From: Octopus bimaculoides
Taxonomy: Eukaryota
Assembly: GCF_001194135.2 (NCBI RefSeq)
Contig: NC_068989.1
Coordinates: 32,362,621-32,422,114 of the forward strand
DNA length: 59,494 nt
Direction: 5' to 3'
Part shown: positions 22,144 to 57,398 of the stretch, in pieces
Numbering within the stretch: the first letter of the stretch is position 1
How the letters are laid out: every line of letters begins with the position of its first letter
Notes under the pieces: model-generated
Told to the model about the DNA's origin: nothing
Databases searched by the model: none
What the model saw: only the letters and a program-made list of their open reading frames with translations
Translations under genes and position numbers: made by a program

Positions 22144-25100
22144 CTAGTAGGTTATCATTAATGCTTCATCCATAAGATCATTATCAATAGGACTGGAGGA
22201 AACTGAAGTGGAGTTTGAATGTAAACTTATTTCACGCACACCTGAAGGTGAAAGAGGAAGGGGATTTTTCTGTCTTGGTGATGGTGTAGGAGACCTACTA
22301 GAAAATTTATGTTTACTATCGTGAGATTTGAAAATATCAACCTTTGATGATGACATCGCTGGTATTGTGGGGTGTTTTTGATGTTGAGCTACAGCCACTT
22401 GATGCTGCAGTTGGGAATTCTTAGGCGATGATGCATAGTCAATAATAAGTCCATTTTCAGGACTGCTGGCATCACTGCCAGGGCTAACTGGGTTTAGTGA
22501 AGAAAGGGTTTTTTTTTGCACTAATGTTTCATCTTGACTGCCTGTAAAATCCTTTTGTTTTTCAAAGTCTCCTGAGGAAATTTCCTCATCTTTTCGTAAT
22601 GCTGAATGGACGTGTGATTCGTATATTTTAGAAAATTCATTTTCACCATTAAACTTAGCATCTTGTAAATGTCCCTTAATTCTCCGGATGGAAGTATGGA
22701 CTTTGGTCCCTGAGTCAGTCCGTAAGGGAGCATTACTGCTGTCTAAATCTCGGCAGTTATTCAATACTCTGTCTAAAATGTCACGTTCTCCACTGCTATT
22801 GGAATTATCAAAACATGTTTTGTCAGAAGAAGACTGTTTTATATTTGCATTAGCAGTATTTAAATGTTTATTTGAACACCACCCTGGCTCTTCTACAACC
22901 GAATCTAACCTATTCCAAGGTTTTGAGCTGTTTTCTGAAATATACCTACCTTTGTTTTCAACTTCAAGATTCTCTGAAGATCTTGATGACTCTTGGGAGC
23001 AATCCCAGTCACTTGATAATTTAGAATGAACATTTGGGGTTTCTTTACTGTTCTCATTTGATTTTTGAGGTGATTCAAGGCATTGGTCTTCCACATCTTT
23101 CTTTTGAACAAGCTTCATTGTTTCATTCAAAAATGGAGATTGACTTTGGCTAGGACTAGATAACTCAAGTATGTCCTCAGAGTAACATCCATTTTCTCTT
23201 GAAAGTGTTTTAGATGTGGAAGACGTTGCTGACCGAGAATCTTTATGTGATTTGTTTGACAGCTGCTGCTTATTATTATTGTTGTTACTACTACTACTAC
23301 TACTATTACTACTACTACTACTGCTATTACTACAACTATTATTACTATTAATACTACTAGTTCTACTACTGCTGTTACTGTAACCACCACCAGAACTACT
23401 ACTGCTATTACAACTGCTGCCCGTGCTTTTGTTTGAATGATCACTTTTCACTGATAAATGGCAGTCTCGTTTTGAAGTGCAACGTAATTCTTTCTTTTCA
23501 ATTGATTCATGTCGGCTCCCTGTTAACACTGGAACTTCCTTGTTAATTATTTTACTATTGAGTGGTTCTTTTGATGATGTACTGACTAAAGTCATTGTAG
23601 TGATGGCCTTAGATGCAAATTTTTCAGAAAATGATTCATCATCATCATCATCATCATCATCGTCATCATCATCATCATCATCATCATCATCCCCATCTGT
23701 TGGCGTAACTTCTTTAGGGTTTGATCTGGCAGAAATATCTCCATCATTAGCACTACTAACATGAACATTAGTTGTGCTTGTCTTGGTGAGTTTATCAATC
23801 ACAGCTGATAATGAACCTTTACGAGACCTTATAGCAGCTTTAGTCTTGTTGAGGCAAGTACTTGTGTTCACATTATTAATGGTGGGGTTGCTGCAGCTGG
23901 TGCTGCTGCTGCTACAATTATTATCACTACTACTGGTGCTGGTACTGCCAGTACCAAGTGCAGCAGCATTTGTTGTAGTAATAGAAGTTGTAATCGTAGA
24001 AGTAGTGGTAGGAGAAGAAGTAGTAGTAGTAGTAATAGTAGTAGTAGTAGTAGTAGTACTAGTAATAATACTAGTAGTAGTCGTACTAGTAGTAGTAATA
24101 GAAATGTTTTTGGCATTGCTTATTTCTTTGGAAGTACTATTCCCACTATTATTGCTGCTTACACTACAGCAACTGGAGAGGTTAAGGTTATTATTACTAT
24201 TGTTTGTGAAATTACTACAACTGCTTGAAATACTTCCAATACTACTGGCTGTAGTTGCACATATAGACACATTACTGCTATTACTATTTTCTGTGTGTGG
24301 GCTGTTTGCCAAAGTATTATTTACAGTACTTTGGGTGACAATTGAAGAGGCCGTCATTTTTGATGTTAATGAACGGCTAATTGGAGATGTAGAAGAGAGT
24401 GAAGAAACAGCTGATGTTGATAATATTGTACTGGTAGCTACAGTGGTTGTAGTTGTTTTGTTACCTGAGGGAGTAGCATTAGAATACACTGAAGGTGTCC
24501 GAACTGAGCTCACATTTACAGATGAACCTGATGTAACTGGCATTACTAAAGGTTTTAATTTAACTGTAGGTGTTTTTGTCATAAGCTTAGAATCTGCTTT
24601 ATTGACAGTTATATTCTGTGAGCTGTGTGATGAAGAAGCTAAGGAGCGAGGGGCACGGTGAGGCTTGGGACACTTCTCCGACTCTTTGTTGTTGCTTGAA
24701 TTACTACAATGACTAGTAGAATATGAGCCAGTCAATTTATCCATTTGCTCATATCTTGAGCACTTTTCAGAAGTAGAAGAATCATACTTTGAAGAAACTT
24801 TTTCACTGATTGAAACTAATGAACGTTTTGAAGAATCAGTCAAATTTGATGCTTTTTTGTCAACAGATAATTTTAAGAAGCTTTTAGTGATTTTTAACTT
24901 CGGCATTGGCTTCGAGTCAGAAGACGATTCAACTTGTGTAGATCGATAGACAGCCCCCTGTACTATCTCCGAGTAATCGTCATTCTTTTCTTGTTTGCGC
25001 TTCTTCCTTTCCTTTTTACTCTCTTCTTTCCGCCTTTTTCCAGAAATATCATTATTTGCACTATTGTGCTTTGACTCTTTCTTTTTTGATTTATCACTTT

Positions 25101-26701
25101 TAGCATCACTATTGTGATATTCTTTGTTCCGCACATTAACACTATGTTTATGGAGAGGTGAGTTATTCTTAAGAGTTCGATTAAAACTATCATTTGGAAA
25201 ATCTTTGGATTCTACATTGCACCTAAGTTCAAAACTCTCTTTTCCTTTTGCTGAATTTGATACTTGAAGGTCTTGCACCAAATTCCAATTTTCTGATTTC
25301 TTCAGCTCATGAGTGCATAAGCGTATTTTCATTACATTGTTAGAACAATCTAATTTGCTTTCCTCTTTTAAAGTCAAAACTTTTGCTTCACTTTCTATGG
25401 AATTCTTGTGTTTTATAATGTCCCTTTCTCCTTTTACATCCTCACCAAGTTTCTCTAGAATAGGAATTGGCCGAGAATTTCCAGAACCACTTTTTTCTAG
25501 ATTACTGCTAGAAGAGTTACTCAATAAACTGGATTTTCCCAGAACAAAATTATTAATTTCAGTTCCAAAAGCTATTTTATCACATTTTTCAAGGCAAATG
25601 TCTTCATCATCATTAACAGGATATACACTAACAGGGTTTAAGAGATCATTCCCAAAATCCAATGTTTCTCCACTATATGTAGAGGTTTGCAATTCACAGT
25701 TAGTTCGTGACAGGGTGCCATTTTCTAAAAAATCATTTGAAGACATTTGTGCTTTATTAGTAAATTCATCAGGGTTGATTGGTTGGCCTGAATCACTAAA
25801 GAGATCTTCCAGAGAAGACACACCATTTTTTGTCATACTGTTCAGATTATGACAACAGTTACTTTTTTCTGATTCTTTCTTAATTATCACATCAGGTTTA
25901 ATATCTTCTAACATGATTGACACCATCTCTCCTTTCATATTTTGTGATTTTGTGTAACATTTATCTGAAAGGTTATTTAAGCAGCTACTTGAGTTGTTAT
26001 TGGAAAATCTTTTGGCTCCATTATCCCTGTTTAAGGATCCATTTTCAGTTAAGTCTATAGTAACCATAGAACCTGAAGTATGTTCAGGAGGACTACTGAT
26101 GTTACTTAGTGCACTGGACAAACTAGGGCTGCTTGAATCAATTTCGATCAGTGACCGATGATCATCTTCAACCATATCGTTATCTTCCATATGCTTTTGT
26201 TTAGGACTGCGTCCAATTATTTCTGATACAGCTCTCCGCTTTTTACCTTTTCGGACTTTCGTTGGATTTGTCATGCAAGCAGTGGCTGTTGTATGATCAT
26301 CAAGCAATTTTGACAACATTGGACTATTATGAACATCAGATGCAGCTGCTGTATCTTGATCAAGGAGAGTTGCTAGCAGGGGGTTCTGAGCCACTTTATC
26401 TGCCCGTATGTCATCCAGCAGCTCTTGCGGTGCCTTTGCAGGATCAAGGTATGGCAAGTTATTTTTGTATTTTTCTGCTACATAACGATGTGGATAGTTC
26501 AAATGATTTAGAGAAAATCGATAGTCATTTGAAATAGATTGAACTCGTGAATGATGTACTGACATAAAGCTACTCATGTGTTTGGAATAGAAGTTCATAT
26601 TATGTAACATATGTGAGCCATTCACCCCAGGAATTGTCTTTTTCAGCTGTCCTAGAACTTTGTTAAGAATTGCACGCAATGACACAGGGATAGACATGCA
26701 T
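22144..26701 (-). CDS. MED1: MED1 terminal coding exon (~1518 aa): LxxLL boxes and disordered tail
   Basis: Acceptor (T)nCAG|A TGC ATG gives CMSIPVSLRAI (cf. vertebrate RCMSIPVTMRAI). Also QNPLLATLL, SPMLSKLL, RKGSLSAVIDKL, and C-terminal PIDNDLMDEALM followed by TAG. Uninterrupted frame. Confidence 0.93.
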
Positions 26702-27049
26702 CTGAAAAAAAAAAAAGAAAGGGCGGAATATATATATATGTATATATAAATGTACAAATACATATAACAAAAAGTGAGCACAAAAGTATTGTAAAGGTGA
26801 TTAGAATTATCAGAATGAGAATTTATTACAGACAGACAAGTAAGGTAGAGAATAAACTACTCAAAATAATGATGTCATAATGCAAAAAGCTAAATTTTAT
26901 CAAGAGAAAATATAGCGAATACAATAAGCCACCATTATAAGTATTAATCATATCTAGATGATTAATATGTGCAACAGGTTTTTTTTCTTTTTTACAAAAT
27001 AACCTGTTCAAGGCTACAAATCAGACATGTGGCTGGGGGAAAACCCAGC

Positions 27050-28920: not shown

Positions 28921-28923
28921 GAG

Positions 28924-31161: not shown

Positions 31162-32428
31162 CTAGGTCATCCCATAAATAACACTGTTTTTCAATTGCAT
31201 GAACTAAAAGTCAGAGGGAGACAGGATAAAATACCTGCATCAACTTGCTATTAAAGCAGGTAGTAATTTTACTTGCTTATTCTTAGTGCAAGTTTTGAAG
31301 AGTGCAGTTTGATTTTAACAGTTATTTTCTCAAAGCTATAATGGAAGTGAAAGAGGAGCATTGCAACGGAAAGTGTGAGGAATATTAATGCAATATATGG
31401 AGATTGGACAATAAGTGGAAGCCAGTGTCAGTGGTGGTTCCAGAAATACTGAGCTAGAAACTACAGCCTAGAAGACAAGCTTTGCATCCTGGAAGGTTTG
31501 TACAGCTCAACAAGGACATCCCGCAAATCCTGGTAACTATTGAGGAACAAGTAGAGAAGCTTGGATATGGTCATTCAACAATTCATAGAAACCTGCATGC
31601 CACTGTAAAAGTCAGGAAATTGGGTCAATGGGTTCCTTACAAACTTTCCGAGTCTAATCGAATGCAGAGAACGAATGTGTGCTCTTCTTTGCTGCCACAC
31701 CTCACAAATGAACCTTTTTTGGACTGAATAGTGACTGGCGACAAGAAATAGGTTCTCTATAAAAATGTCAAGCACCAAAGACAGTGGGTAGGGAAAGGAG
31801 AAACACCAGCACCCCAAGCTAAAGAAGGCTTCCACCCACATAAAGTGTTGTTATCTGTTTGGAAGGATATGAAAGGCTTATTCTGCTTTGAACTTTTAAA
31901 CCCAAACCAAATGATAACAAAGGAGATTTACTGTGAGCAGCTTGAGCAGCTTAAATCAGTGCTAAAAGAAAAACGGCCATCTTTGGTTTTAAGATGAAAG
32001 GTGTTCTTCCATCAGGATAATGCTCAGCCACATACAGTGAGGATGACATTCCAAAGGCTGGAGCAGTATGAATGGGAGATGATGCCCCACCCACCATGTT
32101 CGCAGGACACTGCCCCATCTGATTATCATTTATTCCGCAGTCTTCAAAATCATTTGAACAGAAAAAATATGAATTCAGTAGACGAGATCAGAACAGTACT
32201 GGGGGAGAACTTTTCATCACAGAAACCTGCATGCCACTGTAAAAGTCAGGAAATTGGGTCAATGGGTTTTGGAAGAGGGGCCTTGCAAGTCTACCAGACA
32301 GATGGAAGTACATTATAGAAAATGAAGGAGAGTATATATATATATTTTAGATTAAAAAAGATTTGTTTATCTTAATGTTGAAAAATGAAAGAAGTATGAA
32401 AAGCTGCATTATTTGTGGGATGACCCAA
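31162..32428 (+). mobile_element. Near full-length (~1.27 kb) decayed mariner
   Basis: TA-flanked TIRs CTAGGTCATCCCATAAATAA / TTATTTGTGGGATGACCCAA. Motifs LGQWVPY, FFHQDNAQPH, HPPCSQDTAPSDYHLFRSLQNHL. Confidence 0.92.
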
Positions 32429-35870: not shown

Positions 35871-35949
35871 TTATGTCAGTCATGCTGAATAAATAAATTG
35901 TAATCTCTCTCTCTCTCTCTGTTATATATATATATATATAGATATAAAG

Positions 35950-36314: not shown

Positions 36315-37415
36315 NNNNNNNNNNNNNNNNNNNNNNNNNNNNNNNNNNNNNNNNNNNNNNNNNNNNNNNNNNNNNNNNNNNNNNNNNNNNNNNNNNNNNN
36401 NNNNNNNNNNNNNNTTGGGCCTCACCGAGGCGATGACTACTGACCGAGACCTTTGGAAATATGTATATATATATATATCATCATCATCGTTTAACATATA
36501 TGTATATGTATATATGTATATATATATTTGTATATATATGTATATATGTTTGTGTATATGTATATATATATGTGTGTGTACATATATATGTATATGTGTA
36601 TATATATGTGTGTGTGTGTATTAGAAAAATAATCAGGTACTCAGATGAGTGGATGGTTGTACATCTACAGATTTTTATTAATATGTCACATGTTTTATAA
36701 ATTAACACTTTCACGTAGTCTTGTATGGTTTTCAAATTTTGATTTCACTTTCAGATGCTGTCTCTTTTTATATTATTGAATGTGTAGGGGTGGAGATATA
36801 TATATATATATATAGGATAGTAAGAGAGGGTGAGTAATGGAGGGAAAAGTGAGAGAGAGAGAGTGTGTGTGTGAGTGTTTTTCTGTTGGTGTGTGTGTGT
36901 ATGCCTGTGTGTCAATGTAAACAAGGTTTTCTACTTTCTTCCTTCTCTTTCCCATTATCTATTATTAATCAGGTATTGTGCGTACACTGTTCTACTCGCA
37001 CTTTTACATATTTTAAAAAATAACAAACTTTGAAAAATGTGGTACTTCTACATCTACCATGTTCATCTTTGGCTATTAATTAGCAGATATTCAAATTGAA
37101 ATTGAACCTTTATAACACACATTTTTGATTTCTCACCTTAACGTATAATCTTCCTGTGATAGTTAAAATTTCAACTTTATCCATGGATAGTATATTTTTT
37201 CACATCACTTCTGCTATTGCTGTTAGTTTTTAGTATGTTTCTTACTTATTTTTACTCTATTTAACTTAAAAGAATAGGATGTTTTGAAAGTTCTTAATAA
37301 TTTTTAATTAGTTTTCAAACCTTGTATATTTTATTTTATTTAATGCCTGACCCTGAATGATCCTTATCATTCCATTATTTCATGGCTTGTAGTGGTATTG
37401 TTACTGTTATTCTAT

Positions 37416-41930: not shown

Positions 41931-42297
41931 AAATTAAAATGCAAGTATAATCAGGACAAGATGTTATTCTTACTCTGTATTCCATTAATTTTCATTGAAA
42001 ATAAAGAATAAAACTCTTTCATTATTCAATATAATATTTGCAATTTAAAAAGTACATTTATATAAAAGAATGTGTCCAATAATATAGGCTCGTATGTGAG
42101 ACACAGGTGAATACAAGTGTGTCACATACTGAAAATTAATATATATTTTCCAGTTTCACATATTATTTGTACTCAAAGGTGTACAATATATCAAAATGGC
42201 ATTCTGTCAATCAAGAAAGTATTTTTATGCTATACTCAACTTTTTCAGTGTGGGTGGAGAGGGATGAGCACATTCGACACTTTTTCCTACTATTTAG

Positions 42298-44299
42298 CCC
42301 TCTAGAACCTGCTCATACATCCAGCAACACAAAAGTTGATTCCCTTTGAAATCATAATTAGGTCATGAAATATGATATGGTCCAAATTTGGCACAACAGG
42401 CTGTTAAGGAACACTTGCTAAATGGTCCAAATTTGGCACATAGGTCTTTGCATCTCAGTAAACATTTCAAAGAGTACAAATTTAATCTAGCACTTAATTA
42501 AACAGCAAAACTGTTACTTATAAACTATTTAATACAATGTCAGTCAAACTGAGTTGATTCGCTGAATGTCACTTGAAAACATGGAATTGCATGAAGGAAT
42601 TTCTCTCTTTGTCCAAGCACAGCCACAAGTTGTATTTGCAGCACTTCACTTGACTGCGTCCTTGACAGTCCTTGTATTTGCAGCACTGTCGATCAGGTGT
42701 GTACTCAGGCAAATGCCAGCCACTGGGGCTTTCCTACGGATGATTTTTGCTGGGGGTGGTGTCACAGTGTATAATAAAGGGTATCCGACTTTCTTGATGG
42801 ACAGCAGTGCTTCAGTAATCATCCCTTGGAAAAACACTGAGTTTCATTGGTTATAAATCCAACAACCTCGCATGACGTTTATACCAAATCCAGCTGTTGA
42901 CAACAGTCACGGTTAGTGTATGGTAAAAGATGTACATAAACCAACGACGGGATTTCATGTTACACTTGTACAGTGCTGTCAAGGAGATCCTCCCCATGAA
43001 TTTGTTGTACTCTTGTACAATAGCTGGTTGTATCGCTCAGCCTAGTCTACTGGTTCAAGTCCAATATATGAGGACAGAGTATCAACACATCTGCTGTCAA
43101 ACCAATGTACAGCAATGATGTTTGACTCTAACTCCACTTTCATGTCCAAAGAGCTACACCTGAGTTTCTTAAGATGTTTCTCTAATTTCAGTTGACATCT
43201 TTTCAGCCTGTTGGCCCGAAATGTGCCAACAAAAAACATGAACCTGGTCCTCAGAGCTTTGACAAGAGAAAGATTAGAGAAAAAATTGTCTGCAAAGATC
43301 TTACAGTTCTTCCCACTCTCAAGTCCCTCAACCATCTGGAGAACCACATCTCCATCTATTCCCAGTGCAGATGGAGCTCTGTGCTTGACGTCAGCCAAAC
43401 CTTGATAGACATCAAAGTTATACAGGATGCCTGATACACCTGCTCTAGGCCAGAGCTTGAAGCCCCAAGGGTTAGGTTTTCCTTGCATGTACCGTTTTAG
43501 AGCTGCTCTCCCCTTGAAGACAACCATTATTTCGTCATCACAATGGTGTTCTTCAGGAGTGATATTCTTGATATTGGCTTGAACGACCTTAGCCATGGAC
43601 TCAATTTCCACACTCTATCATCAGCCTTGTCCTGCTCTTTTACTTTCAAGCTGTTGACAAAGTGAATCACAGGCACGTTTGTCGACATGCTAAAAAAGAA
43701 AGAAGCAGCTCTTCATAACCGGCACGAAACAAATAATTTGGTGCAGTATGAAATGCTAAGGTTAAAGGAAGCAAATTCACACATTATACAATACAAATGT
43801 ATTCTGAAAGATACAGAAAAGTCAGTCAATCATTCTAATTTTACACTTAAAACCTGTTGGACAATATTTGGCACATAGAAGAAGAGTTTTTTCTCATTGC
43901 ATTTTCCACTTATGCCTATAGTGCCAAATTAGGCACTTGTACTTTGAAGTGATGCCATATCAAAAAGATAACACATTGTGACTATATACAAATATTGCAA
44001 TGTCAATTCAACCAATACAAGAAAATGTAGGTAAAATATGAGGTACTACTGACATTTCTTTGTAGTGATGATAGGAAGTGGGATCAGTGCAAATACATAT
44101 TGCTGCTGCAGAGGAGAGAAAAGGCAGGAAGCATCCCACAGTGTCAGAGGTACTAATTTGCAGTGGTTTAGTGGTTAGAGCATGAAGCACATTCCAGAGC
44201 ATTGTTTAAAAAGTATTCTTGTCCTCCGTCACTATTTTTCCTTTGGCTGGAGATCACTAAAATCTATGTGCCAAATTTGGCACACACGGCACTAGAGGA
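42298..44299 (-). mobile_element. Decayed ~2.0-kb piggyBac (PGBD-like) transposon
   Basis: DEIMVVFKGR, KPNPWGFKLW, FADNFF and VGTFRANR motifs, plus a C-terminal Cys-rich remnant. Ends TTAG-CCCTCTAG / CTAGAGGA-TTAA. Subterminal CCAAATTTGGCACA repeats. Confidence 0.9.
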
Positions 44300-46892
44300 T
44301 TAACTTTTCTATCTGATAGAGAAGTCAGCATTTTGTCTGTTGCCATCCACCTCAGTTAATTTTGCTTTTCTCCTAGCTCTGTGCTTTCAGCGCCCCCCCC
44401 CCTCCCAACTGATATGCGCCTTCAACCTGAAACTTCACATGGCAGTAGTCCTTTGGTGGTGGTGATACACTGTGCTTTTCATATACACAATAAAAGAATT
44501 TACAAATGTTAAATTTACTAAACCACAAGATGTACTTCCATTTCTTTCCAGAACATCAAACTGGATAGTATGCATGTCACTGGTCAGATTTGTCAACACC
44601 ACTCATGTGCTTATTGTACAAGATATTTATAATGGCTTTACTTTCAGCACCAACACGTGGCTGTTTACTAGTAGACAAGAATAAAATTTGCCATTTGTCC
44701 TTGTGGCTAGCATGTTCCTCTTTTGCTTCAGGATGATGTTCCATTTTTGTTTAGTTTAGTAGATTTTATTTCTTGGAGTAGTCCTTAGTGATTGCCCATT
44801 ATTGTATTGCAAGTATACGTTTTCACAAGACCAAGATGTCTGCCAAAACCACTGAAGAAAAAAATAGTCAAAATGCAAATGTCTTTGTTAATGGTTAAAG
44901 GGCTCAGTTAACGATGACACAACATTATACCCCAATCCATTTGGTCTCTCTCCGTTGTATTTTTTCCCAGTGCAAATAGCAAAGTTTGCACAGTAACATG
45001 TACCTGATTCACAGTGCTCCCATAGCTTGATACTCCATTTTGTTCATTTAACTGGTATGTATTGCCAAAACTGTACCCTACTCTTATACCTTATCATTGC
45101 TTCATCAACACTGAGATTTTTTCCTTGCAGACATATAGCTATATTATTTTTCAGGTTAATCAAGTATTGGGCGCATTCTGTATAGGGAGTCATAGTCTTG
45201 TTCATTCCAGCTGGGGACATATAAAGTATCTCTCGGGTGTAGATATGGATTTAATTTCAAATACTGGTTTTTTACTGCATTATACTTGATATATAAGGGT
45301 CACTATACCTTTTATCTGGGATGCAGTAGTTCTACAGTTTGCAAATTGTTTATACCAAACGTTATATTTATGTTAATAAAAAAACCCCAAATTTCTGATG
45401 TATCTGTTGGTCATCTTAATGGATTGGGACTTCCATAAGCAGTAATAATTTGTTGGGCATAACAATTTATTTCTTCTGTGACACTTTTGAAAAAGTTTGT
45501 TTGGGAAAAAAAAAAGTAGTTAATTGGGCAGGGATGGTGGTGCAGTGGGTGTAGTAAGAGATAGAAGTGACTCAGAGATGATAAATCAGGAAAGTGAAGG
45601 ATGATGATCATGGCATAGGAGTAATGGAGAAGGAGATGTAAGGGTACAGAAAAGTGGCTATAGTAAATGGGTAGGGTAACAGATAAGAAAGGGTGTTGGA
45701 AATGATAGCAGATATAAGAAGTATTAAGAAGTATGACAGAGGAATTGGGGAGAAGATAACTGGAGGCACAGAAAGGAAGTGATTAGTGAACATAGTGTGG
45801 GGAAAGGATAATAATGATAATGAGGGTGGAGAGAGGAGTAATTGGTAGCACAAAGTTAGGAGATATATGTGCCAAGGAAGGATGAATGTTGAGAGAAAGG
45901 TGAGGAGTTAAGGTGATGTGGGTAATGCTTGATGGAGCAGAATGGATGTAGGGCAGGGTCAAGGAAGTACAAGGATAGATAGAATATTTTTAGAACTCCA
46001 TATTTGTTGTGACGAAGAGGTCTTCTTGAACACAGAAAATTGCCAATCATCTTAGTTTTTTGTCATCTCCTCTGTGAGGTTCAGCATCTTGAGATCAACT
46101 TTCACTACCTCTTCCCATGTCTTCTTGGGTTTCCCTCTTCCACAAGTTCCATTCACTTCAAACCAGCACATGTCTAACAACAACCATTTTCTATTTGCAT
46201 TCTCTGTAGCAAATATATATTATGCTTCCACAGCTTCTAAGTCCACCACAAATTGACTGAAAAAAATAATATGCAACCCTGATTATGGTATGAAAGCAAT
46301 AATTTCCAAATTGGATCCTAGACTTGTACAACTGTCATTAATTTTTACCTCTATAAAAATTAAACCAGAGCAAAATCCAGCACTTACTTCACCCAGTACT
46401 TACTTCACTAATTGTCCAAACTTTGATCTTTCATTTTATGGGTGTGTTAGATACATTTTTAGAAATGTACCTAAACATTATGATCTATCGTACCTCCATA
46501 GACAGTCACCTCCTATGTTTGTAAAATGTACTTTGAACTGTGTTGATAAAGGATCTTAATTTAAATAGATCATGATTTCCTTACTTACATATTACTGTGC
46601 TGCTTGTGTCTCATACATGCAAGAACTGATACAAATTCAAAAAACACAATATCTTCAGGTCTTCATCATACCCAAAACGTTCTGGTCACTGAAAGGTTCC
46701 TCCCTATTTCATTACAATGGGTTTTAGCATTACAAATTACCATAGGGATGTTTATAGCAGAAAAGAAGAAAAAAAAAGATCAAATTTCCTCCAGACATCA
46801 AAAACCACAAACCATCTTGTTTTTCTTCTTTGTTTACATCCTGTAGAATGATTTATTTTTACAATTATTGCTTGGAATATTTCAGAAAAAGT

Positions 46893-47033
46893 AAGGCAGT
46901 GAGCTGGCAGAATTGTTGGCATATTGGGTAAAATGCTTAGCGGCATTCCATTTATCTTTATGCTCTTAGTTCAAATTTTGCCAAGATCGGCTTTACGTTT
47001 CATCCTTTCAGGATTGATAAAATAAGTACTAGT
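46893..47033 (+). mobile_element. Decayed tRNA-derived SINE
   Basis: AAGGCAGTGAGCTGGCAGAA head, B-box-like AGTTCAAATT, and CTTTCATCCTTTC...GATAAAATAAGTAC body. Confidence 0.6.
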
Positions 47034-47551
47034 TTAAGAAAAGCTTTTGGAACCCCTTCTTTATCGCGTTCCTGCACAATTCTTGTTGTTTTTGTTATTA
47101 GAGTTGTTGTCAATTAATGTTTTCACTGTCATACATTGATGTATCTGATTGTCTATGAAGCACTTGGTAATGCATGTTGTGAATGCCAACATCAGAAAAG
47201 GAAAGCATTCTGTGGATGGTCACTTGAAATGACTTTTTCTTGTGTATTCTGCAAGGTTGTATTATGTAGAGTAAGATGCTTTACAAGTGTACATGGCAGG
47301 AATATTGTTATAATTTCTTTTTGTGTGTGTGTGCATATGTATANNNNNNNNNNNNNNNNNNNNNNNNNNNNNNNNNNNNNNNNNNNNNNNNNNNNNNNNN
47401 NNNNNNNNNNNNNNNNNNNNNNNNNNNNNNNNNNNNNNNNNNNNNNATATAAATTCAATAATAGGATGAATTCTTTTACAAGAATTTACCAAGTAGCTAG
47501 CATGAAAAAAACCTCATAAGGGAAAAAAATCCATCATTTATTCCCAAATAA

Positions 47552-47611
<60 letters not shown>

Positions 47612-47732
47612 GCACACACAAATAATTAGTAGCAACAGAAGCCATATTAATACGAAAAGGTAATATTAGCACTTAAAAGTGGATCTTTCATTACCTGGTA
47701 CAAAGCCACTTCCTACACTACCACCCTTCCTG

Positions 47733-47937
47733 CAAAAAAACCTTTGTCTTGCAAGATACTTGGTGACCTCAGTGGTGCAAGTGCCATGTAAAAAGCACCC
47801 AGTTCACACTGTAAAGTGGTTGGCATTGGGAAGGGCATCCAGTCTTAAAAGTCATGCCAAAGCAGACAGTGGACCTGCTGTCAAACTGTCCAACCCATGC
47901 CAGCATGGAAAACAGATATTAAATGTTGATGATGATT
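47733..47937 (+). mobile_element. Diverged RTE-type 3' UTR copy
   Basis: GGTTGGCATTGGGAAGGGCATCCAG...CCATGCCAGCATGGAAAAC...GATGATGAT. Confidence 0.75.
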
Positions 47938-48232
47938 GTATTCTGTGTAGCTCTCAGAGAAAAGCCCAATTAACCTAGCTTTTAGTATTTTGACAATAAA
48001 TTACAAGTGGAAAGAAACATCTCATTTCATTTTCTTTTTGTTGCAGTTTATTTTACAGCACTCTTGATGAAATGCAATATAGATTCAGTATTTATTTGGA
48101 CATTAACTGCAATTATCTTTCTATCTTCACAAGACTCTTCAGTTTTGAGCATTCTGATTTTTAAGAACTTGTTTTTATGGAAATAAAGTTACTTTAATTT
48201 ATACCAGAATTGCATTTATTTTTGTATTACAG

Positions 48233-48357
48233 CTTGCCATCTTTCTCAGGATTAAGCAACATGAACAGTTGTATGCTTCCAGCTTGCTTTGTACTGACTC
48301 TACGAACACCTCTCACTGTCCTGGCTTCATTGTTGCAAAAGATTGAATCAATAACAA
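48233..48357 (+). CDS. MED1: MED1 internal exon C (125 nt)
   Basis: LPSFSGLSNMNSCMLPACFVLTL...LLQKIESIT (cf. vertebrate PSFSSITSANSVDLPACFFLK). Phase 2 to 1. Confidence 0.92.
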
Positions 48358-49276
48358 GTGAGTATTTTAGAACTATTAAAACTATTGCTAGTGGCATTGT
48401 GGTGTTGCCATGTGGTGTTCAGCATGATCTTAGCTTTTTGTCTTTATGTTTATGCCTTTTTTTTATTTGGTAACTACTCTTTTCATAACATTGATATATG
48501 CACCCAAGGAAACTATTCTTGTTTTATCTATGAAAAATTAAAATTATAATTTTCAAGTTAACAAGTATCATGAATGCTTACAATTTTTCATTTTCTTGAG
48601 AAATTTAAAGAAACTGAATCTAATTTAAATGAAGGTTCAAAGCTAGTCTGTGTGATTGTGTGTGTGTGAGACACACACACACACACATGTATATATACAT
48701 ATAGCTTAGATTTTTGCCTATAATTATTGGAGAATTTGGCTTCATAACTAACTATCAGTACTATTCTTGGGAAGCTGTGATTCGAAAACCAGAACGATGA
48801 AATCTAATCAGAAGATTAAAGAACAAGGTACCATCAAAATATGTAAAACAATCAGGAAGTTCAATATGTGTGCATGTTACACACACATGCATGAGTACCC
48901 TGTCTGATACTGTCTAAATTCCAATGAAAGAGTTTCTTGGTTAGAAACAGGCTCTTTCTCCATTGGTGAGAAATTCAAAAAATAAAATATGACAGTACAC
49001 CTATGTATATAACAGTCTTATGTTCAGATTCTTTTGGGATTTTCACTCACGAGGTTTAAATCAGCTTAAGCCAAACCCTTGTGGCTGCAAAGCAAACTTC
49101 TTTACCACAGTGTCAGGCCTGTATGATAGCGCTAATAAAAAGAGACCCAATATATGTTCATAGAACTTATTAAAACTCTCAGTGTTTTGCTTGTTAACTA
49201 ATTGTGTGTGTATAGTTAATGGAATACTATGCTGGCCTACATGAAGTGTTAATGATGTGATAACCTGAATTTTAAT

Positions 49277-49870
49277 TCATCATCATCATCATCATCATCA
49301 TCGTTGGACGATTTGACTGAGGACTGGTGAAACCGGATGGCAACACCAGGCTCCAATCTAATTTGGCAAAGTTTCTACAGCTGGATGCCCTTCCTAACGC
49401 CAACCACTCAGAGAGTGTAGTGGGTGCTTTTACGTGTCACCCGCACGAGGGCCAGTCAGGTGGTACTGGCAACGGCCACGCTCAAAATGGTGTCTTTTAT
49501 GTGCCACCCACATAAGAGCCAGTCCAGGGGCACTGGCAACGATTTCACTTGGCTTGCTGGGTCTTCTCACGCACAGCACATTTCCAAAGGTCTCGGTCAG
49601 TAGTCATCGCCTCGGTGAGGCCCAATGTTCGAAGGTCTTGCCTCACCACCTCAGCCCAGGTCTTCCTGGGCCTACCTCAACTGTTACGGTGTGGCACTTT
49701 TTCACGCAGCTATCCTCATTCATTCTCACCACATGTCCATACCAGCACAATCGTCTCTCTTGTACACCACAACTGATGCTTCTTATGTTCAGCTTTTCTC
49801 TCAAGATACTTACACTCTGACGGGTATGCACATTAACATTACACATCCAGCGGAACATACTGGCTTCCGG
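49277..49870 (-). mobile_element. RTE LINE 3' end (ORF C-terminus plus short UTR)
   Basis: MFRWMCNV...RRLCWYGHVVRMNEDSCVKKC...LGLTEAMTTDRDLWK, then the UTR and (CAT)n tail. Confidence 0.9.
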
Positions 49871-50099
49871 AGCATCCCCTCAAATTTTCTATATGCATAT
49901 AAAATTCGAGGGGATAATTATGATGCAGGCTACCACAGTATTCTGTCAATTATAGACACATATACACACACATGCATGGTGTGTGTGTGTGTGTGTGTTT
50001 ATAACCAGCCAGCCAGCCACCTAATCCCCTATCAATCTGATGGGCACATGCAGATTAACTACTTTCTCACCACAAACAAGGATAGGTAGATGCTGGTAA

Positions 50100-51045
50100 A
50101 TGCAAAGTCCTTCCTCAATGAGGAATGTACAACTATGTGTGCTAGATGTGCAGGTATAATGAACTCTTAAGAATGTATAGATAATAGACCACAAATATCC
50201 AAGGTGATCCTTAGAAATAGCAGATAGCTTTGATTACCTGAGTGACCAAGTTAACTGTGGAGGAGGAAGTGTAGTTGCTAGAATAAGAACAGGCTGGGCA
50301 AAGTTCAGAGAGCTACTACCTTTGTTGGTAACAAAGGCCCAAGAGTGAAAGGCAGATTGAATGATGCCTTTGTACATACAGCTATGCAACATATCAATGA
50401 AACATGGGCTGTAACTGCAGATAACATGCAAAGGCTTGAAAGAAATGAAGCCAGCATGCTCGACGATACATCAAGCTAAGTAAAACTGGATGAGTAATGT
50501 AAGTGTATGTACAACATAGTGTAAGCATCTTAAGAGAAAAATTGAGGATAAGTGGCATCAGAAGTGGTGTGCAAGAGAGAAGACTGGATTGGTGTAGCCA
50601 TGTGATGCATATGAATGAGGACAGCTGCATAAAGAAGTGCTGATCTCTAATTGTGGAGGGAACTTGTAAAAGGGAGTAGACACTGGAATACATAGTACAA
50701 AGTGGTGAGGAAGGATCTTCAGACATTGGGCCTCACAGAAGAAATGACAAGGGATCGAGACTTTTAGTAGTTTGCTGTGCTGGAGATACCACGTCAAGCT
50801 AAGTAAAACTGTGGCCATCCATACATACAGGTATGTCCTCTACATCCCTCTCTTAGCTGAGAGATCCTTCTCTTGAGGGCTCATGAGTGTTGGTGTCACA
50901 TAAAAAGCACTCATGCTGGTGCCACGTAATATGCACGTAGTACACTCAGTAAAGTGGTTGGCATTACGAAGGGCATCCAGCTGGCCAGCTTCTGCCAAAC
51001 TCTCCAACTCCACAGCATGGAAAATGGACATGAAATAATGATGTT
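50100..51045 (+). mobile_element. Decayed RTE LINE 3' portion
   Basis: RIRTGWAKFRELLP, ETWAV and EVVRKDLQTLGLTEEMTRDRD remnants, followed by a diverged UTR. Confidence 0.78.
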
Positions 51046-51536
51046 CACACACACACATACACACAATATTCCTAAAAATGTTCAGATTTCCAACTTTCTT
51101 CCAAGTATGTGAGGAACCTCTTTGTTTACATTCTGTGTAACGATTCATTTTCTGCAGTAATCGATTACAAAAAATAAAGTTAAAAAACAATGTAACAGTT
51201 TTTTTGTTTTTTTTGGAAAGACCAGCTAGGTCTAATATCTTTCTGTTAACATGGAAAAAGTGGACATTGAATTGATAATAAATCTTCCAAATTTGCTTTC
51301 TAATATTTATGAAAAGCAGTATTATAATGAACTGACTGGACATCTAAATGAATAAAGTAATATACTACAATATTTTTATAATAATTAATTATATGTTTGT
51401 TTAAGAGGTGGAGATATTTAATTAGGCTTTGTGTGAAATTACTGATATAATATTTAAACTAGTAAAATTTATACTATCGTGAGAGGTAGAAATTTGTAGA
51501 AATTAAAATTTTGTTTTGATGGTTGTTCTTTTATAG

Positions 51537-51637
51537 ATATGGAGGTTCCACGAATATCAGAAGGAAAGAAGCTGTTATCATTGTTGATTGAGACCATTTC
51601 ATGTCAACAATTATTTAACAAAAAGGAGCTTTATGTT
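51537..51637 (+). CDS. MED1: MED1 internal exon D (101 nt)
   Basis: TATAG|AT ATG...GTT|GTTAGT encodes (N)MEVPRISEGKKLLSLLIETISCQQLFNKKELYV. Phase 1 to 0 bridges exons C and E exactly; sequence similarity is weak. Confidence 0.75.
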
Positions 51638-52576
51638 GTTAGTAATGTTTCATATTTTATATTCCCTTTATAAATCCTGAAGATGCTATGTTTTTAAAAA
51701 TTGAACTGGATCTTATGATTCAATGCTGGCCAACCTTTGTTGCAAATGTTCTCTCCCTTTGTCCCCTCCAAATCACTTGGTTCTACACTTATGTTATAAA
51801 AGTAGTGAATTGAATTTGAAATGCATGTAAACAATTTTATTATTTTATTTATATCAGTAGTTTTTATTGATGTCAGCTAAAAAAGAATTATTATGATAAC
51901 ACACATTAATATTAAAATAAAAATAATTAAAATTGTATACATCATTTATTAATATGATCTCTGGGGGTGATGACTAGCAGTAATTTTTGCAACATTAAGT
52001 TTCAAATTTGATAAAAGAAATCATAAATCCTCCTATGGCACTATTTCCATTTGGTTTCTTTTCTTGGTTAAAATTTGATTTACTGCACTAAAGCATTTGT
52101 TGTCAGATAGGAGGCATAGAAAAGCAGTAAAAAATTGCTTGGTTTTAATCCATAATATAGGATACTTCAGCCTACCTTGCAACTACATATCACAGAAGCT
52201 TTGATTTTCAAAAGTCATCTTTATTAATGGTGGTCTTTTTCTTTTTTTTTTTTTTTGTTATTCTATTATGCACACAAGTGGGTTTTTATCCAGTTATTAA
52301 ATCCTATCTCAAAATATTCTTTCAGTTGTTGTAAATGTACAAAGTATGTCCTGAGATTATCATGTTTAAATAATTGTTAGAAGTTTTTCATTGGTCAAAT
52401 GAGAGAACTCTCATCTGTCAAGGTTTCACTTGAACAGTTCAGTTTTACTTGTATGAGATTAAGATTACTTCCTTGCATTTTCAAATTCAGGGTGTTTATC
52501 TTGCCAGTAAACTAGGAATGAATTTTTGGTTTACAAGTAAAAGTTCAACAATAGCATCATAAAACTGGCAGATATA

Positions 52577-53376
52577 CCATAAATCCTTGAGTATGGTCCG
52601 CCCTTGAGTATAATACGCAAGGGATTTTTAAGGGGATGTACCTCTGAAAAACCTAAACCTTGTGTATAATAAGCACCCCTTCTCTAACTTGAGTCAAGGA
52701 GGTCTATATAACGTTCTTGGTTTGTAAACATATATACGGTAATGTCCTTTATTATTATTGTATATATAACATAATGCAAACGTGTAGTTTTATTGTGCAC
52801 TTTGTTTGCAGAAAATAAAGAAATAACAGTCATAATGTCAGTGAAAACTAAATATTGAGTAAATTGCCTTTACATATTTATCACTATCAGTTACAAAAGC
52901 AAAAGCAAAAACATTTATTCAAATCCTTAAAATTCAACGTCACTTTCAGCATCAAATAACTGTTCCATTTGTTCCTCCGTAAACATGTCAGCATCATTGT
53001 AGTGTAAATCTCCGTCATCGTCAGATTCATAGTCAACATCAGAAGATTCACTTTCATTTATTTCATCTTTCCATACAACGTCATCCTGAGTACAATCCAG
53101 TGAAGACGATATACAACACTTTTATTTTAATAAATGTTGCTTACTGAAAGTTATGGATGATTCTTTTATGACTTCATTGCTTTCAGGCTTAGCTTAAGGT
53201 GTTTTCGTGCCCAACATCACAAAATGCATCTGAATAAACATTGCCGGACAGCAAATAGAGACTCAGACATTGCTTAGGAAATATTTTTCATTTTTAACCT
53301 CGTATATAGTACACACTAGGGATTTTGACCTTTAAATTTGGGGGGAAAAATGCGGATTATACTTGAGGATTTACAG
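52577..53376 (-). mobile_element. Internally deleted pogo/Tigger-like element
   Basis: TA-flanked TIRs CCATAAATCCTTGAGTAT / ATACTTGAGGATTTACAG. The minus strand retains the transposase C-terminus KCCISSSLDCTQDDVVW...FDAESDVEF*GF. Confidence 0.8.
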
Positions 53377-53384
53377 TACTTCAA

Positions 53385-53830
53385 ACAAGATCTTATTGAC
53401 AGCCATTGAACTTCAGTGTGGAGAAATATGGCTTCCAAATTTTCATTCTGTTCCCATGATTGGCAGAACAGCCGAGTGCTTAAGACCCAAGCTTTTATTT
53501 TAACAGCAAATATTATTATGGTCAGACTTGAAAACAACTGTTTACTAACCTTAACAACAAGGTGTTGTCTATGAATTACAGTGTGATTAGTGAATAGATC
53601 AAGCACTTCCTTTTGATATATGATACCAGGTCAGCTTGACAGTCTATCAAAGTGTATCATCAGTTGTGCACACTATCATGTTGTTGAAGGGAATGTGCTT
53701 ATCTTTGATATAACTTTGAAATGCTTGATTCTGCAATTAGACTTTCCTAAAACTTCATCAATTCAAATCACATGCTGGTTTATTGACAAGTGACTAAAAA
53801 GATTGTCTGTTCTTTGGAAGATCAAGCTTA
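53385..53830 (-). mobile_element. hAT (Buster/SCAND3-like) transposase remnant
   Basis: HTVIHRQHLV...KIKAWVLSTRLFCQ...LHTEVQWLS matches the hAT Buster motifs HCxIHRxxL and LHTEVRWLS. Confidence 0.75.
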
Positions 53831-54109
53831 TGTTCTTTTAGCTGCAGTGGTGCCAAAATGTTTGAAGTTTTAGGAAATAAGTGCAGGCTAAAAAAAAATT
53901 AGGTGTTAATTTTCTTGAATGACCTGTCAACTGATAATGATAAAAAAAATGCTAGGTTGCTACTGCTCTTACATAAAATAGATAATTTATTTTGAGAAAT
54001 AGCCATTCACTTACATTCAAGAAATTGGTAATAAAAATAAAGGGCACCAAAGAAAACTTCACCCCAGAGTGGGTGGATTTTTCTACATCATCATCCCAAG
54101 AGAATATTT

Positions 54110-54300
54110 AACCCTTTAATATTTAAACTGGCTGTATCAAATATTCTACCTGTTTTATGTTCTCTCACCTACCCTACAATGTTATTCGAAAAATAATCGT
54201 ATCATTGAAGTCTAAAAACTGTGAGATAATGTATGATCAATTCAAAACAATGTGAATAAATAAGCATTACATTCAATATAGTAATCTGAATACTAAAGAA
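54110..54300. mobile_element. piggyBac-type MITE, second copy
   Basis: TTAACCCTTTAATATTTAAACTGG...CTGAATACTAAAGAATTAA; inverted homolog of 30743-30962. Confidence 0.7.
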
Positions 54301-54759
54301 TTAATTGAAAAATTCACACAACCATGATGAGAAAGATGTTAGATCTATACCAAACACCTCTAGGTCTTAATGCATAGACTCTATCTTCCTATTAATAGTA
54401 CATTGAGACATCCAAACATTTTAAAACTAAATATTTTCAAAATGAAAACAAATTTATTAAAATATCAATTTTTTTCTCCTTAGTTCATTGGTGATTATAC
54501 ACAATGTTGCTTACTACCCAACACAGACTTCTAAACACTCTCCTGTAATATAATTTTGTTCATTGCTCACCTCATAATTCCAAATACCCCCATGCCTTAT
54601 ACCTCAAGGGTATAAGATACAGACCCCCATTGAGAAATGTTGAAATAATTTATGCTTAATATTCAAATTCTTAAATCACTTGCCTAACATGATATTATAT
54701 AAAACAAAAACTTGTTTTTTTTTTAAATTTCTATTTATTTATTTACTTGTGTGTTTCAG

Positions 54760-54949
54760 ACTTTACCTGATCAGCAACATGTTTATTTCTTGGGTGGTCA
54801 TCAGAGTGGTATAGAAGAGGAGGGAGTTCTTATATCAAAGATTCCTTTTACTCATCCAACCAATTTACCTAAAATTTTGTCTTATCTTCGTCAGCAAATG
54901 CTATTTAACACTGCTATTACCAGTTGTATCCGGCCTTCTGCCAAAAGAG
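54760..54949 (+). CDS. MED1: MED1 internal exon E (190 nt)
   Basis: TLPDQQHVYFL...GVLISKIPFTHPTNLPKILSYLRQQMLFNTAITSCIR (cf. vertebrate GTLVSKITFQHPGRVPLILNLIRHQVAYNTLIGSCV). Phase 0 to 1. Confidence 0.93.
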
Positions 54950-55609
54950 GTAAAATATATTCAACATACTACTTCTCTATGAACTGATTTGCCTTCTATC
55001 TTGCTTTCTAGAAACAGAAAACCCTTACATAGTTGTAAGAGAAAATATAAAAATGGAAACAAAATGATTATAATAACAGTTTTAGTCTGGTATCATCATT
55101 TCGTCATTGCTGCTGGTGGCACAACACATACTCAGTAGGCTGTAAAGTGGTTGGCTAATGAAGCAGCAACAATGTAGGGTTTGAGAGGATTATTTAGTGT
55201 TAGTCTGTAGTCTTTTAGAGGGTAAAATAACCTCTATATCTATAATGCTAGTGTCACAAAAAAATGCACCTGTTCCACTGTGTAAAGTGGTTGGTGTTAC
55301 AAATCAAGCTAAAATTGAGATGTTGATGATGATTATACACAGTCTCATGCACATTGTTGGGTAATGAGATGGAGGTGTAATCAATATACACTGAGTACAG
55401 CTGGTTCCATGACCTGTAACTCTGCAGTTTCCAAAAGACACATCACTCCACTTCGATGATGGAAACGGTGCAGAGACGAAAAATGCATATTGACAATGGC
55501 ACTAACAAAAGTAAAAATACTAGTAATGAAATTGAAAAACATAATAGTGATCACCTGGATCAGCCAGGCTGTCTGGTGCCAAGTCAGCTCTGCTGGGCAC
55601 GGTATTCAC

Positions 55610-56150
55610 TCCATTCCCTTTATGCTCTTGCCATTCTCCTCCACGTTGTTCCAAACCTTTTTTTTAAATTGTCTTCCCACCTCATTGGATGTCTTCCGAG
55701 TGGCCTCTTCTGCTCTTGCGGGTACCACTTGACAACTGCACGGGTCCAGCGATTGTCTGTGAACCCTGCAGCATGACTGGCCCATCGTAGCTTTTTGTGG
55801 TAGTATTCTACAACAATATCCTTCACTCTAGTTCTATCCCTGATCTCCTTGTTCCAGGTGTGATCTCTTAGCGATATTCCCAACATCAACCTTTCCATGA
55901 CTCTCTGCATTGTCAGCAGACGTTGATCTCCATCAAGACCCAAGTCTTACATGCGTATAGCATTGCCAGCATGGCTGTGCTGTTGAAGACATTGGTGTGA
56001 GTTGCCTTGTCTAGGTTCACCTTCAGCACATCCTTCATGGCGTTGAATGCTCTTACCCTTAGTGAGATCTCATTCTTCATATCTCACCTCATAGTCACTT
56101 CTTGACCGAGACACACATAGCTGCTCACCTCTTCTATTTCATCGCCTCCA
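55610..56150 (-). mobile_element. RTE-1-like LINE fragment of a different family
   Basis: QRVMERLMLGISLRD...EIRDRTRVKD...KLRWASHAA...DNRWTRAVVKWYP...RPLGRHPMRWED. Confidence 0.8.
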
Positions 56151-57302
56151 ACTGTTAGGCTACCAATTGGTACACTTCAGATGAGAGAAAGGAGAAAAAA
56201 GTGCTGCAGTTAGTGTCGCAGGAACAATATGTGAAGGAAGTGCAGCTAAGGGAAGCCATTAGGAAAGAATGCTGGGATCAGCTTGAGGAAATAGATGATG
56301 ACTATGAGACACTGGTCCAGAAGTAGAAGAAAAACTTGAGGAGTACAAAGGTTGCAGTTCTGAAGGAGACAGGATCTTTGAGCAGACAAAGAAGGTGATG
56401 AAAAAGCAGAGAAACATGATTGTGATAACTAGCTGAAATACCTGGCTAGTCATTACTCATAGTTTTTCAGTTCTCACCAGACTGTGGGTCATGAAATCCT
56501 TTCAAAAGACTTCATTGAGTCACATAAATTCAAAATATATTTTCTATTCTTAGCTAGTAATTTCCCTTGGTGTTGTTCCTCTAGAAATTTAGCCTATATG
56601 ACTCCTCAGTTCAATACTACAATTCCATATTCCATCTTATTCCACTAAACCTGTTTTGTAATAGCTTTGCTAAAATCCAGTTCATCTAATTCAAAACTCA
56701 TATCATCTACATGAGGCTTTGTGTAGTTGCCTATCTTTTGTACATATTCCTTTTAAAGCAATTTCTGATGATTACTGCCTTGTCAGTTGCTAGGGTAATG
56801 CTACCTGATTAACTAAGAGAATACTTAGCATAGTAGGTACATGACTTGATACTTCTGACATCTTGATAGCTATTCCCAGTGGACTTTCAAATTTTCCTGC
56901 TTTCGTTTTCTTAATCACTTCACTAAACACATCTAAGCCAGAATGAGGTTTGGTGTCAATATCAGTATGCCTCATTTTTTAAAATCAAAGTCACTTTTGT
57001 TTATGTGGTCACCTGAATGGTAGTGGGCCAGTTATATGACTGAAAGTGTGCATTGCAGATGATAAACGTATTTTGCATTTGATATCTGAAATTTTTACTG
57101 TTTCTTATATTTAATACAAGAAAGATGTATTTGTATGTTGAATCTGAGGAATCCAAAAAATTTACTTCAAAATTTTCCAAGTTTTATATACTTCTATATC
57201 TTATAACAATTCGAATTTTAAAAATTTTCTGTGATTTATTTTTCTGAAATGTCTGCATTGAAACAGAACCTTTTGCATATGTTTTGAATTTTATAATTAC
57301 AG

Positions 57303-57398
57303 ATCTTAAAAGTGCACTGGTATTCGAGTTATCTGCTTTGTCTTTGCATCAAGTTAATGTATCATTTGAACATCCACTACAAGATTCTATGGTTACAG
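57303..57398 (+). CDS. MED1: MED1 internal exon F (96 nt)
   Basis: (D)LKSALVFELSALSLHQVNVSFEHPLQDSMVT (cf. vertebrate LQFEVCPLSESRFSVSFQHPVNDSLVC). Phase 1 to 1. Confidence 0.92.

Follow-up and report, generated by a model that had tools for sequence, protein, structure and literature searches.

The window, i.e. the whole stretch of 59 494 nucleotides that was analysed, comes from chromosome CM046609.1 of the Octopus bimaculoides assembly GCA_001194135.2 and carries coding exons of MED1, the gene for subunit 1 of the Mediator complex. An extended locus (L001; CM046609.1 32393074-32430197) matches positions 30454-59494 of the window with no mismatches and runs on past its end. Exons were searched for by tblastn with the tick, spider and Aplysia MED1 proteins and combined in a hand-curated gene model, and RNA evidence was taken from assembled RNA contigs of four runs (X13, X14, X17 and X18) belonging to two studies. 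The nine exons are as follows, in protein order (a slash marks an exon border).

Window-equivalent 66243-66169 (L001 35716-35790), minus strand: exon preceding exon A (pre-A), beyond the window; found by tblastn and in RNA contigs
40378-40532, plus strand: exon A, 155 nt; found by tblastn, acceptor ttgcag/TATCATT
41021-41135, plus strand: exon B, 115 nt; found by tblastn, donor intact, with a gap 11 nt further on at 41147
48233-48357, plus strand: exon C, 125 nt; found by tblastn, RNA contig pieces over 48231-48357
51537-51637, plus strand: exon D, 101 nt; matches residues 108-140 of an annotated fragment (P0004), RNA contig pieces over 51537-51637
54760-54949, plus strand: exon E, 190 nt; found by tblastn (E from 1e-17 to 1e-21)
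57303-57398, plus strand: exon F, 96 nt; found by tblastn, donor ACAG/gtgatt
34452-34347, minus strand: exon G, 106 nt; found by tblastn, borders aag/CCGAG and CACCA/gtatgt
26701-22144, minus strand: exon H, the last coding exon, 4558 nt; ends in the stop codon TAG and lies inside an open reading frame at 22144-26781

The borders are canonical (GT-AG) in all nine exons of the curated model, with tttttttttcag/ATGCATG as the acceptor of exon H. Both tblastn and the model confirmed the coordinates of a first-pass annotation made from the sequence alone, which had placed exons A-F on the plus strand (40378-57398) and exons G and H upstream of them on the minus strand. That annotation had described one gene in two orientations; the strand split holds, but the division into two pieces does not, as a third piece, pre-A, lies on the minus strand beyond the window. 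The layout of the gene in the assembly is thus minus, plus, minus: pre-A on the minus strand, A-F on the plus strand and G-H on the minus strand. A search of the window for 5' exons with the N-termini of the tick and spider proteins at very loose thresholds gave nothing convincing; the 5' MED1 exons are located outside it, on the minus strand, and encode the first approximately 180 residues. No second copy of any MED1 exon was detected by tblastn in either the window or the extended locus, in agreement with the earlier reading.

Joined together, exons A-H form a single open frame of 1839 codons. Exon F closes in phase 1 (ACA G/gt) and exon G opens with ag/CC GAG, giving the continuous reading DSMVT-A-EFDMSDIT; the seamless fit of these splice phases, as originally claimed, is borne out by the phase 1 borders, the 1839-codon frame and the Med1 domain that it encodes. 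The joined product scores 81.1 bits on the Pfam Med1 profile (PF10744), above its cut-off of 25 (E = 1.2e-22), over profile positions 127-427 of 427, the first 126 being encoded beyond the window. The alignments with tick, spider and Aplysia MED1 run unbroken through pre-A/A and F/G/H, and the Aplysia protein is 53% identical to the octopus protein over the Med1 domain. Exon H matches tick MED1 (tblastn) over residues 481-660 and again at the C-terminus (930-1033). It carries two LxxLL motifs (NPLLATLLDQD and SPMLSKLLDD) right after the Med1 domain, just where the nuclear-receptor boxes of vertebrate MED1 are situated, as well as extended low-complexity Ser/Thr/Asp tracts. The long, disordered, Ser/Thr-rich C-terminal part typical of MED1/TRAP220 is here provided by this single large last exon, whereas the low-complexity tail is shorter in the arthropod MED1 proteins that were compared. 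Octopus MED1 is an ordinary orthologue of MED1/TRAP220, Mediator complex subunit 1.

The RNA contigs cross both strand switches. In contigs from the four runs and both studies, the match to exon F stops at 57398 and gives way at once to exon G: the unmatched sequence that follows, CCGAGTTTGATATGAGTGACATCACCAATC, opens exon G, and reciprocally the one behind 34454 is the end of exon F in reverse complement. Each F-G contig has at G the strand opposite to that at F (plus on A-F, minus on G). The transcript junction between 57398 (plus) and 34452 (minus), which the first-pass annotation had proposed to look for, is thus present in one contig in each of the four runs. Further along, the loose end that precedes 34347 reads as the start of exon H in reverse complement. 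At the other switch, the loose end before 40376 is TGTGATTTAAGCATGCTTGCACAACTACAG, the end of the minus-strand pre-A exon, so that the RNA contigs join pre-A to A. Between the two switches, four runs show the joint from exon A to exon B (40531 to 41020), bounded by GT..AG; the sequence that follows 41135 in the contigs opens exon C, so that B leads directly to C in RNA, and exon D directly continues exon C in the coordinates of the RNA contig record. Exon E is supported by the loose end before 57301, which corresponds to its end, and by a length in exact agreement with the coordinates of the RNA contigs. In each of the four runs a single RNA contig spans pre-A, A, B, C, D, (E), F, G and H in contiguous record coordinates with 0 mismatches. 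Such a continuous contig has the appearance of a normal cis-spliced mRNA, and the F-G continuity in four runs places the strand-split observation far beyond chance. The RNA contigs of the four runs represent a single isoform, with no alternative trans-spliced isoforms among them and no separate transcripts stopping at F or beginning at A.

The positions at which the gene changes strand can be compared with the gaps in the assembly, which are given below with the block that they delimit (none of these features is stranded in itself).

36315-36414: gap of exactly 100 N, a scaffolder join at the left edge of the plus-strand block
36415-59494: part of the plus-strand block within the window, likely a backwards insert, which extends to window-equivalent 64464
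41147-41463: gap of 317 N inside the B-C intron, coding sequence unaffected
47344-47446: gap of 103 N inside the B-C intron, coding sequence unaffected
58425-58434: gap of 10 N with identical 70-bp sequence on both flanks
Window-equivalent 64465-64564 (L001 34012-34111): gap of exactly 100 N, the second join, at the right edge of the plus-strand block

The whole block (36415-64464) measures 28,050 bp and is flanked on both sides by MED1 sequence on the minus strand. Its second breakpoint is located outside the window: the second 100-N gap, together with the minus-strand pre-A exon beyond it, makes the plus-strand block one 28-kb unit between two scaffolder joins. Every path in the assembly from a minus-strand to a plus-strand exon crosses a 100-N join. 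The other 11 of the 14 gaps in the region are irregular in size (541, 313, 10, 233, 21, 65, 317, 103, 10, 2616 and 363). As the RNA record leaves exactly 416 nt between exons B and F (125 for C, 101 for D and 190 for E), the two gaps in the B-C intron hide no coding sequence. The 10-N gap at 58425-58434 was considered as the right breakpoint and rejected on account of its exact 70-bp duplicate flanks and of the position of pre-A past a later 100-N gap; it is a false gap where two contig ends overlap.

Version 2 of the O. bimaculoides assembly combines the published (2015) shotgun assembly with Hi-C data, using HiRise for scaffolding and Juicebox for curation, and its scaffolding included no gap closing (PMC9068888, supplement). 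The supplementary note that covers the octopus also gives a 'default gap of 100 bp' for the squid assembly (PMC9068888), and this default probably applies to the octopus assembly too. Among the short-read DNA contigs of the four runs none bridges 36315-36414, where the assembled orientation is without contig support. The flanks of this gap consist of a (TA)n microsatellite and high-copy SINE-like repeats (depth up to 10^6), and the unique DNA contigs nearby end at 35918, 36296 and 36866 with loose ends that are repeat consensus. The block begins on its left with an interior fragment of a SINE-like element, and to the right of the second join lies a SINE head in the opposite orientation; these two pieces are not halves of one copy, and no repeat copy split across the hypothetical true junctions was seen. 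The contig ends in these repeats are neutral as to orientation, and the repeats at the gap edges point to continuity in neither of the two orientations.

The strand split of MED1 very probably reflects a mis-oriented scaffold in the assembly. This is the reading that the first-pass annotation had preferred, with the error at 36315-36414, and it gains support from the Hi-C build, the two 100-N joins and the collinearity obtained by a single flip. When the block is flipped computationally, all nine exons fall in order on one strand, and the two introns thus created (5667 and 9028 nt) compare with 488-7645 nt for the rest. MED1 would accordingly read as an ordinary single-strand, cis-spliced gene, in which an old shotgun scaffold of approximately 28 kb with exons A-F would have been set between its correct neighbours, but the wrong way round, at the HiRise/Juicebox step. 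The true order on the minus strand would be the 5' exons, a join, A-F, a join, G and H, and we infer that the 28-kb block has the opposite orientation in the DNA of the animal. Mis-orientation of short contigs is a recognized and frequent error of Hi-C scaffolding that damages gene prediction (PMC7672694). The octopus case shares with the class of errors addressed by HiC-Hiker (PMC7672694) the short unit, the fixed-size gaps, the correct neighbours, the broken gene prediction and the repair by one flip. It does not differ from that class in kind, the orientation error being deduced here from gene structure and mRNA. Fixed-size gaps lie on both sides of the block, the flip restores the collinearity of the mRNA and the unit is short compared with Hi-C resolution, short contigs being those that suffer mis-orientation most often (PMC7672694). 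A protein search for MED1 of sister species gave no other cephalopod, only a truncated O. bimaculoides fragment and the proteins of distant molluscs and arthropods.

We may wonder at this stage whether the assembled order could instead be real. Splicing in trans between transcripts of opposite strands is known for Drosophila mod(mdg4), also for lola, and for eri-6/7 in C. elegans. If the 28-kb block were a true, fixed inversion, MED1 mRNA would be built from three primary transcripts by two such events, the first from the minus strand to A-F on the plus strand and the second to G-H on the minus strand, which would be a striking example, the first in a mollusc, and would involve a core transcription gene. 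As with mod(mdg4), exons from opposite strands of the reference are brought together in the mature mRNA, at canonical splice sites throughout, and no data show the DNA of the block the other way round. Yet such canonical joining fits trans-splicing and the ordinary cis-splicing of a gene whose scaffold is mis-oriented equally well, and the assembled orientation is based on Hi-C scaffolding alone. The layout of mod(mdg4) lies in continuous, verified genomic sequence, whereas no continuous, sequence-verified DNA connects the opposite-strand exons of octopus MED1, both switches falling in unsequenced 100-N joins. Moreover, mod(mdg4) has many alternative 3' exons that are trans-spliced to common 5' exons and octopus MED1 has one constitutive isoform; two trans-splicing events would be required here, unlike in mod(mdg4), and in an essential single-copy gene. 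The RNA contigs offer neither alternative trans-spliced isoforms nor separate transcripts that end at F or start at A, and the simple flip yields perfect collinearity with ordinary introns. Opposite-strand trans-splicing is very rare. Mis-oriented short scaffolds, by contrast, are common (PMC7672694). We therefore consider a fixed inversion very unlikely.

It is also very improbable that the inversion is one allele or a polymorphism of the sequenced animal, captured by the assembly, with the intact mRNA coming from the normal allele. Octopus genomes are heterozygous and rich in repeats, which makes an inversion between inverted repeats conceivable, and both joins are flanked by SINE-like repeats. 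On the other hand, there is no breakpoint sequence, the supposed breakpoints coincide exactly with the scaffolder joins, and the runs of two separate studies all carry the intact mRNA. The 2015 shotgun scaffolds appear to end at the joins, so that the pieces would be unlinked in either orientation (as deduced from PMC9068888). As for two partial MED1 copies (a duplicate or a pseudogene) on the two strands, joined seamlessly by coincidence, the difference in strand is the only argument in favour. There is no overlap between the two exon sets, which complement each other exactly in protein order, neither the window nor the extended locus holds a second copy, and single RNA contigs fit all of the exons in contiguous coordinates with 0 differences, which makes this explanation extremely improbable.

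The strand split is thus almost certainly an error of assembly and annotation and no new biology; the value of the finding is practical, and its biological meaning is nothing new. It places an error at about 32.399-32.427 Mb of CM046609.1 in a widely used chromosome-scale reference for O. bimaculoides, and errors of this type skew cephalopod orthology tables, gene counts, RNA-seq quantification and RNA-editing analyses. The rest of the assembly could be screened for flipped scaffolds by the same signature, namely one continuous mRNA whose exons change strand exactly at 100-N joins. At the locus itself, standard annotation had been expected to break the gene in two; the breakage did occur, but the NCBI annotation presents MED1 as three 'genes' of 1550, 294 and 186 amino acids, a consequence of the mis-orientation of the block. 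The annotated 186-residue Med1 fragment runs on rightward on the minus strand, and the middle annotated piece starts at an internal methionine and runs on past a splice donor into intron sequence.

With the conserved region of the predicted protein as query, a protein search retrieved P0004, an annotated 294-aa ‘mediator of RNA polymerase II transcription subunit 1 [Octopus bimaculoides]’; among the search matches, O. bimaculoides was the only cephalopod represented by a MED1. P0004 is encoded on GCA_001194135.2, chromosome CM046609.1, 32393074-32430197. This locus (L001) is identical to window positions 30454-59494, with 0 mismatches, and runs 8 kb beyond (window = L001 + 30453; positions above 59494 are window-equivalent). 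The exons were mapped by tblastn with tick, spider and Aplysia MED1 and with P0004, after which the borders were inspected, and the exon coordinates of the first-pass annotation proved to be correct.

MED1 coding exons in protein order (tblastn and border inspection; for pre-A, tblastn, border and RNA loose end)
66243-66169 (window-equivalent), - strand, pre-A exon
40378-40532, + strand, exon A
41021-41135, + strand, exon B
48233-48357, + strand, exon C
51537-51637, + strand, exon D
54760-54949, + strand, exon E
57303-57398, + strand, exon F
34452-34347, - strand, exon G
26701-22144, - strand, exon H, with the stop codon at its end

Every exon is bordered by an AG acceptor and a GT donor and the phases agree, including at the F/G junction, where the phase 1 end of F (ACA G|gt) meets the phase 1 start of G (ag|CC GAG) as originally described. 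Joined together, pre-A and A-H give one open frame of 1839 codons, which contains a Pfam Med1 domain (81 bits, E 1.2e-22), followed shortly by two LxxLL motifs (NPLLATLLDQD and SPMLSKLLDD) and by a long low-complexity tail within a single 4.56-kb exon (H). The nuclear-receptor boxes of vertebrate MED1 sit at this same place, just downstream of the Med1 domain. The gene is an ordinary MED1 orthologue. The tail in exon H (22144-26701, -) is extremely low in complexity, with 19 consecutive Asp, extended runs of Thr/Ser and tracts rich in Asn/Ser; the long spurious ORFs on the opposite strand (e.g. 23774-24661 +) are mere mirror images of these tracts.

Sequencing runs that contain this DNA came under a single organism label. 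The strand switch was followed in RNA from two studies, with two runs each (X13 and X14, 2015; X17 and X18, 2020). Each run has an assembled contig (4026, 4580, 5082 and 5118 nt) whose match to exon F is exact and which carries on beyond it with CCGAGTTTGATATGAGTGACATCACCAATC, the opposite-strand start of exon G. The same contigs match exon G on the strand opposite to F, with record coordinates that follow on (in the X17 contig, F at 2268-2365 on + and G at 2364-2471 on -), and their loose ends at G are the reverse complement of the F end on one side and of the H start on the other. RNA spanning 57398(+) to 34452(-), which the first-pass annotation had proposed to look for, is thus present in all four runs. 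Within the + strand exons, the A-B joint is GT..AG, B continues into C, C and D are contiguous within an RNA contig, and the B-to-F spacing of 416 nt equals C + D + E exactly. The MED1 mRNA is thus a single continuous molecule with conventional splicing. Both 41147-41463 and 47344-47446 are gaps within an intron, and no exon is concealed in them.

A further piece of the gene lies beyond the window. The MED1 segment before exon A (Aplysia residues 178-201) was found by tblastn at L001 35789-35718 on the - strand. This pre-A exon ends in ...CAACTACAGAG|gtagga, in phase 2, and the missing third base is the start of exon A; the loose end of the RNA contigs ahead of exon A, TGTGATTTAAGCATGCTTGCACAACTACAG, is its exact end. 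Since pre-A on the - strand joins A in RNA, the order is -,+,- rather than only +,-. The earlier description of one gene in two orientations therefore holds for the strand switch, but the pieces number three and not two. Likewise, the annotation is broken as had been predicted, but into three genes rather than two.

MED1 genes in the L001 gene table
left side of L001, - strand, 1550-aa product with exons G and H
window 40454-57577, + strand, 294-aa Med1 fragment (P0004)
right side, starting at L001 35712, - strand, 186-aa Med1 fragment

NCBI's P0004 model begins at an internal Met of exon A and continues past the donor of exon F into intron sequence (...DSMVTGDSFISVILSF...), which adds 59 spurious residues and a spurious stop.

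The extended region contains 14 gaps, three of exactly 100 N (5370-5469, 36315-36414 and 64465-64564) and the others of 541, 313, 10, 233, 21, 65, 317, 103, 10, 2616 and 363 N. The block carrying exons A-F is the exact interval from the second to the third 100-N gap (36415-64464, 28,050 bp). The chromosome-scale assembly combines the already published shotgun assembly with new Hi-C data, and its supplementary note mentions, for the squid assembly, ‘the default gap of 100 bp’ (PMC9068888). Carried over to the octopus, this default and the Hi-C build suggest that the round 100-N gaps are Hi-C joins of older scaffolds, so that only Hi-C contacts fix how the 28-kb scaffold is oriented towards its neighbours. 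That Hi-C scaffolding tends to mis-orient short contigs is well documented, and such errors are known to harm gene prediction (PMC7672694). When the block is reversed, pre-A, A, B, C, D, E, F, G and H become collinear on the - strand. The two introns created by the flip would measure 5667 nt between pre-A and A and 9028 nt between F and G, with a nominal 100 N counted in each; the remaining introns range from 488 to 7645 nt.

Taken together, the 100-N joins, the Hi-C build and the flip argue strongly for mis-orientation of the block, the explanation preferred from the outset. The 28-kb scaffold would have been inserted backwards and MED1 would be a normal cis-spliced gene, and we regard this best explanation as very probably correct; the locus behaves like a mis-oriented scaffold in a Hi-C assembly on each point that can be tested. 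The RNA data would be explained equally well by a real, fixed inversion in which opposite-strand trans-splicing, as in mod(mdg4), took place twice, yet its breakpoints would have to coincide by chance with both scaffolder joins and a very rare mechanism would be needed twice, on an essential gene, which makes it highly improbable. The resemblance of octopus MED1 to mod(mdg4) goes no further than an mRNA that appears to join opposite strands; octopus MED1 lacks the opposite-strand layout in verified continuous DNA that characterizes such cases. It is also very unlikely that the assembly caught an inversion allele while the mRNA came from an intact one, a scenario that has no supporting breakpoint sequence. 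As for two partial MED1 copies, the exactly complementary exon sets and the single RNA contigs matching all exons contradict them, and their probability is close to negligible. The strand-split MED1 is very probably an assembly artefact, of practical and not biological interest.

Around 36315-36414, a (TA)n microsatellite and SINE-like repeats reach word depths of up to 10^6 in short-read DNA contigs, and unique DNA contigs stop at 35918, 36296 and 36866; in neither orientation do the repeats at the gap edges make up the two halves of a single element. The SINE-like element, whose head resembles CATCATCATCGTTTRACGTCCGC, is very high-copy (49253-49837, 36415-36490, 58310-58700 and many further copies), with word depths of 10^5-10^6 in DNA contigs and 10^4-10^5 in RNA contigs. 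Both scaffolder joins have copies at their edges, and this is probably the reason that the shotgun scaffolds broke off at these places. The remaining 100-N gap, at 5370-5469, is presumably another Hi-C join; the 30.8-kb scaffold from there to 36314 holds the MED1 3' end. The 10-N gap at 58425-58434, inside a SINE-like repeat, has the identical 70 bp on both sides (58355-58424 and 58435-58504); since the contig ends overlap, it is a false gap that can simply be closed.

The window also contains fragments of transposable elements. The B-C intron carries an ORF fragment with a piggyBac-type transposase domain (43042-43611, -; PF13843 DDE_Tnp_1_7, E 9e-22). At 7484-8353 (+) and 1852-2157 (-) lie fragments of reverse-transcriptase ORFs (PF00078) from a non-LTR-like retroelement and a remnant of a mariner-type transposase (PF01359). 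The ORFs at 122-715 (-) and 31482-32318 (+) resemble further mariner remnants, but a Pfam scan of pieces 122-418 and 32001-32318 matched no family. Finally, 38 nt at 38589-38626 are matched by short RNA contigs from X13 (511 nt) and X17 with unrelated flanks on both sides, and may represent a very small exon of a different transcript or part of a repeat.
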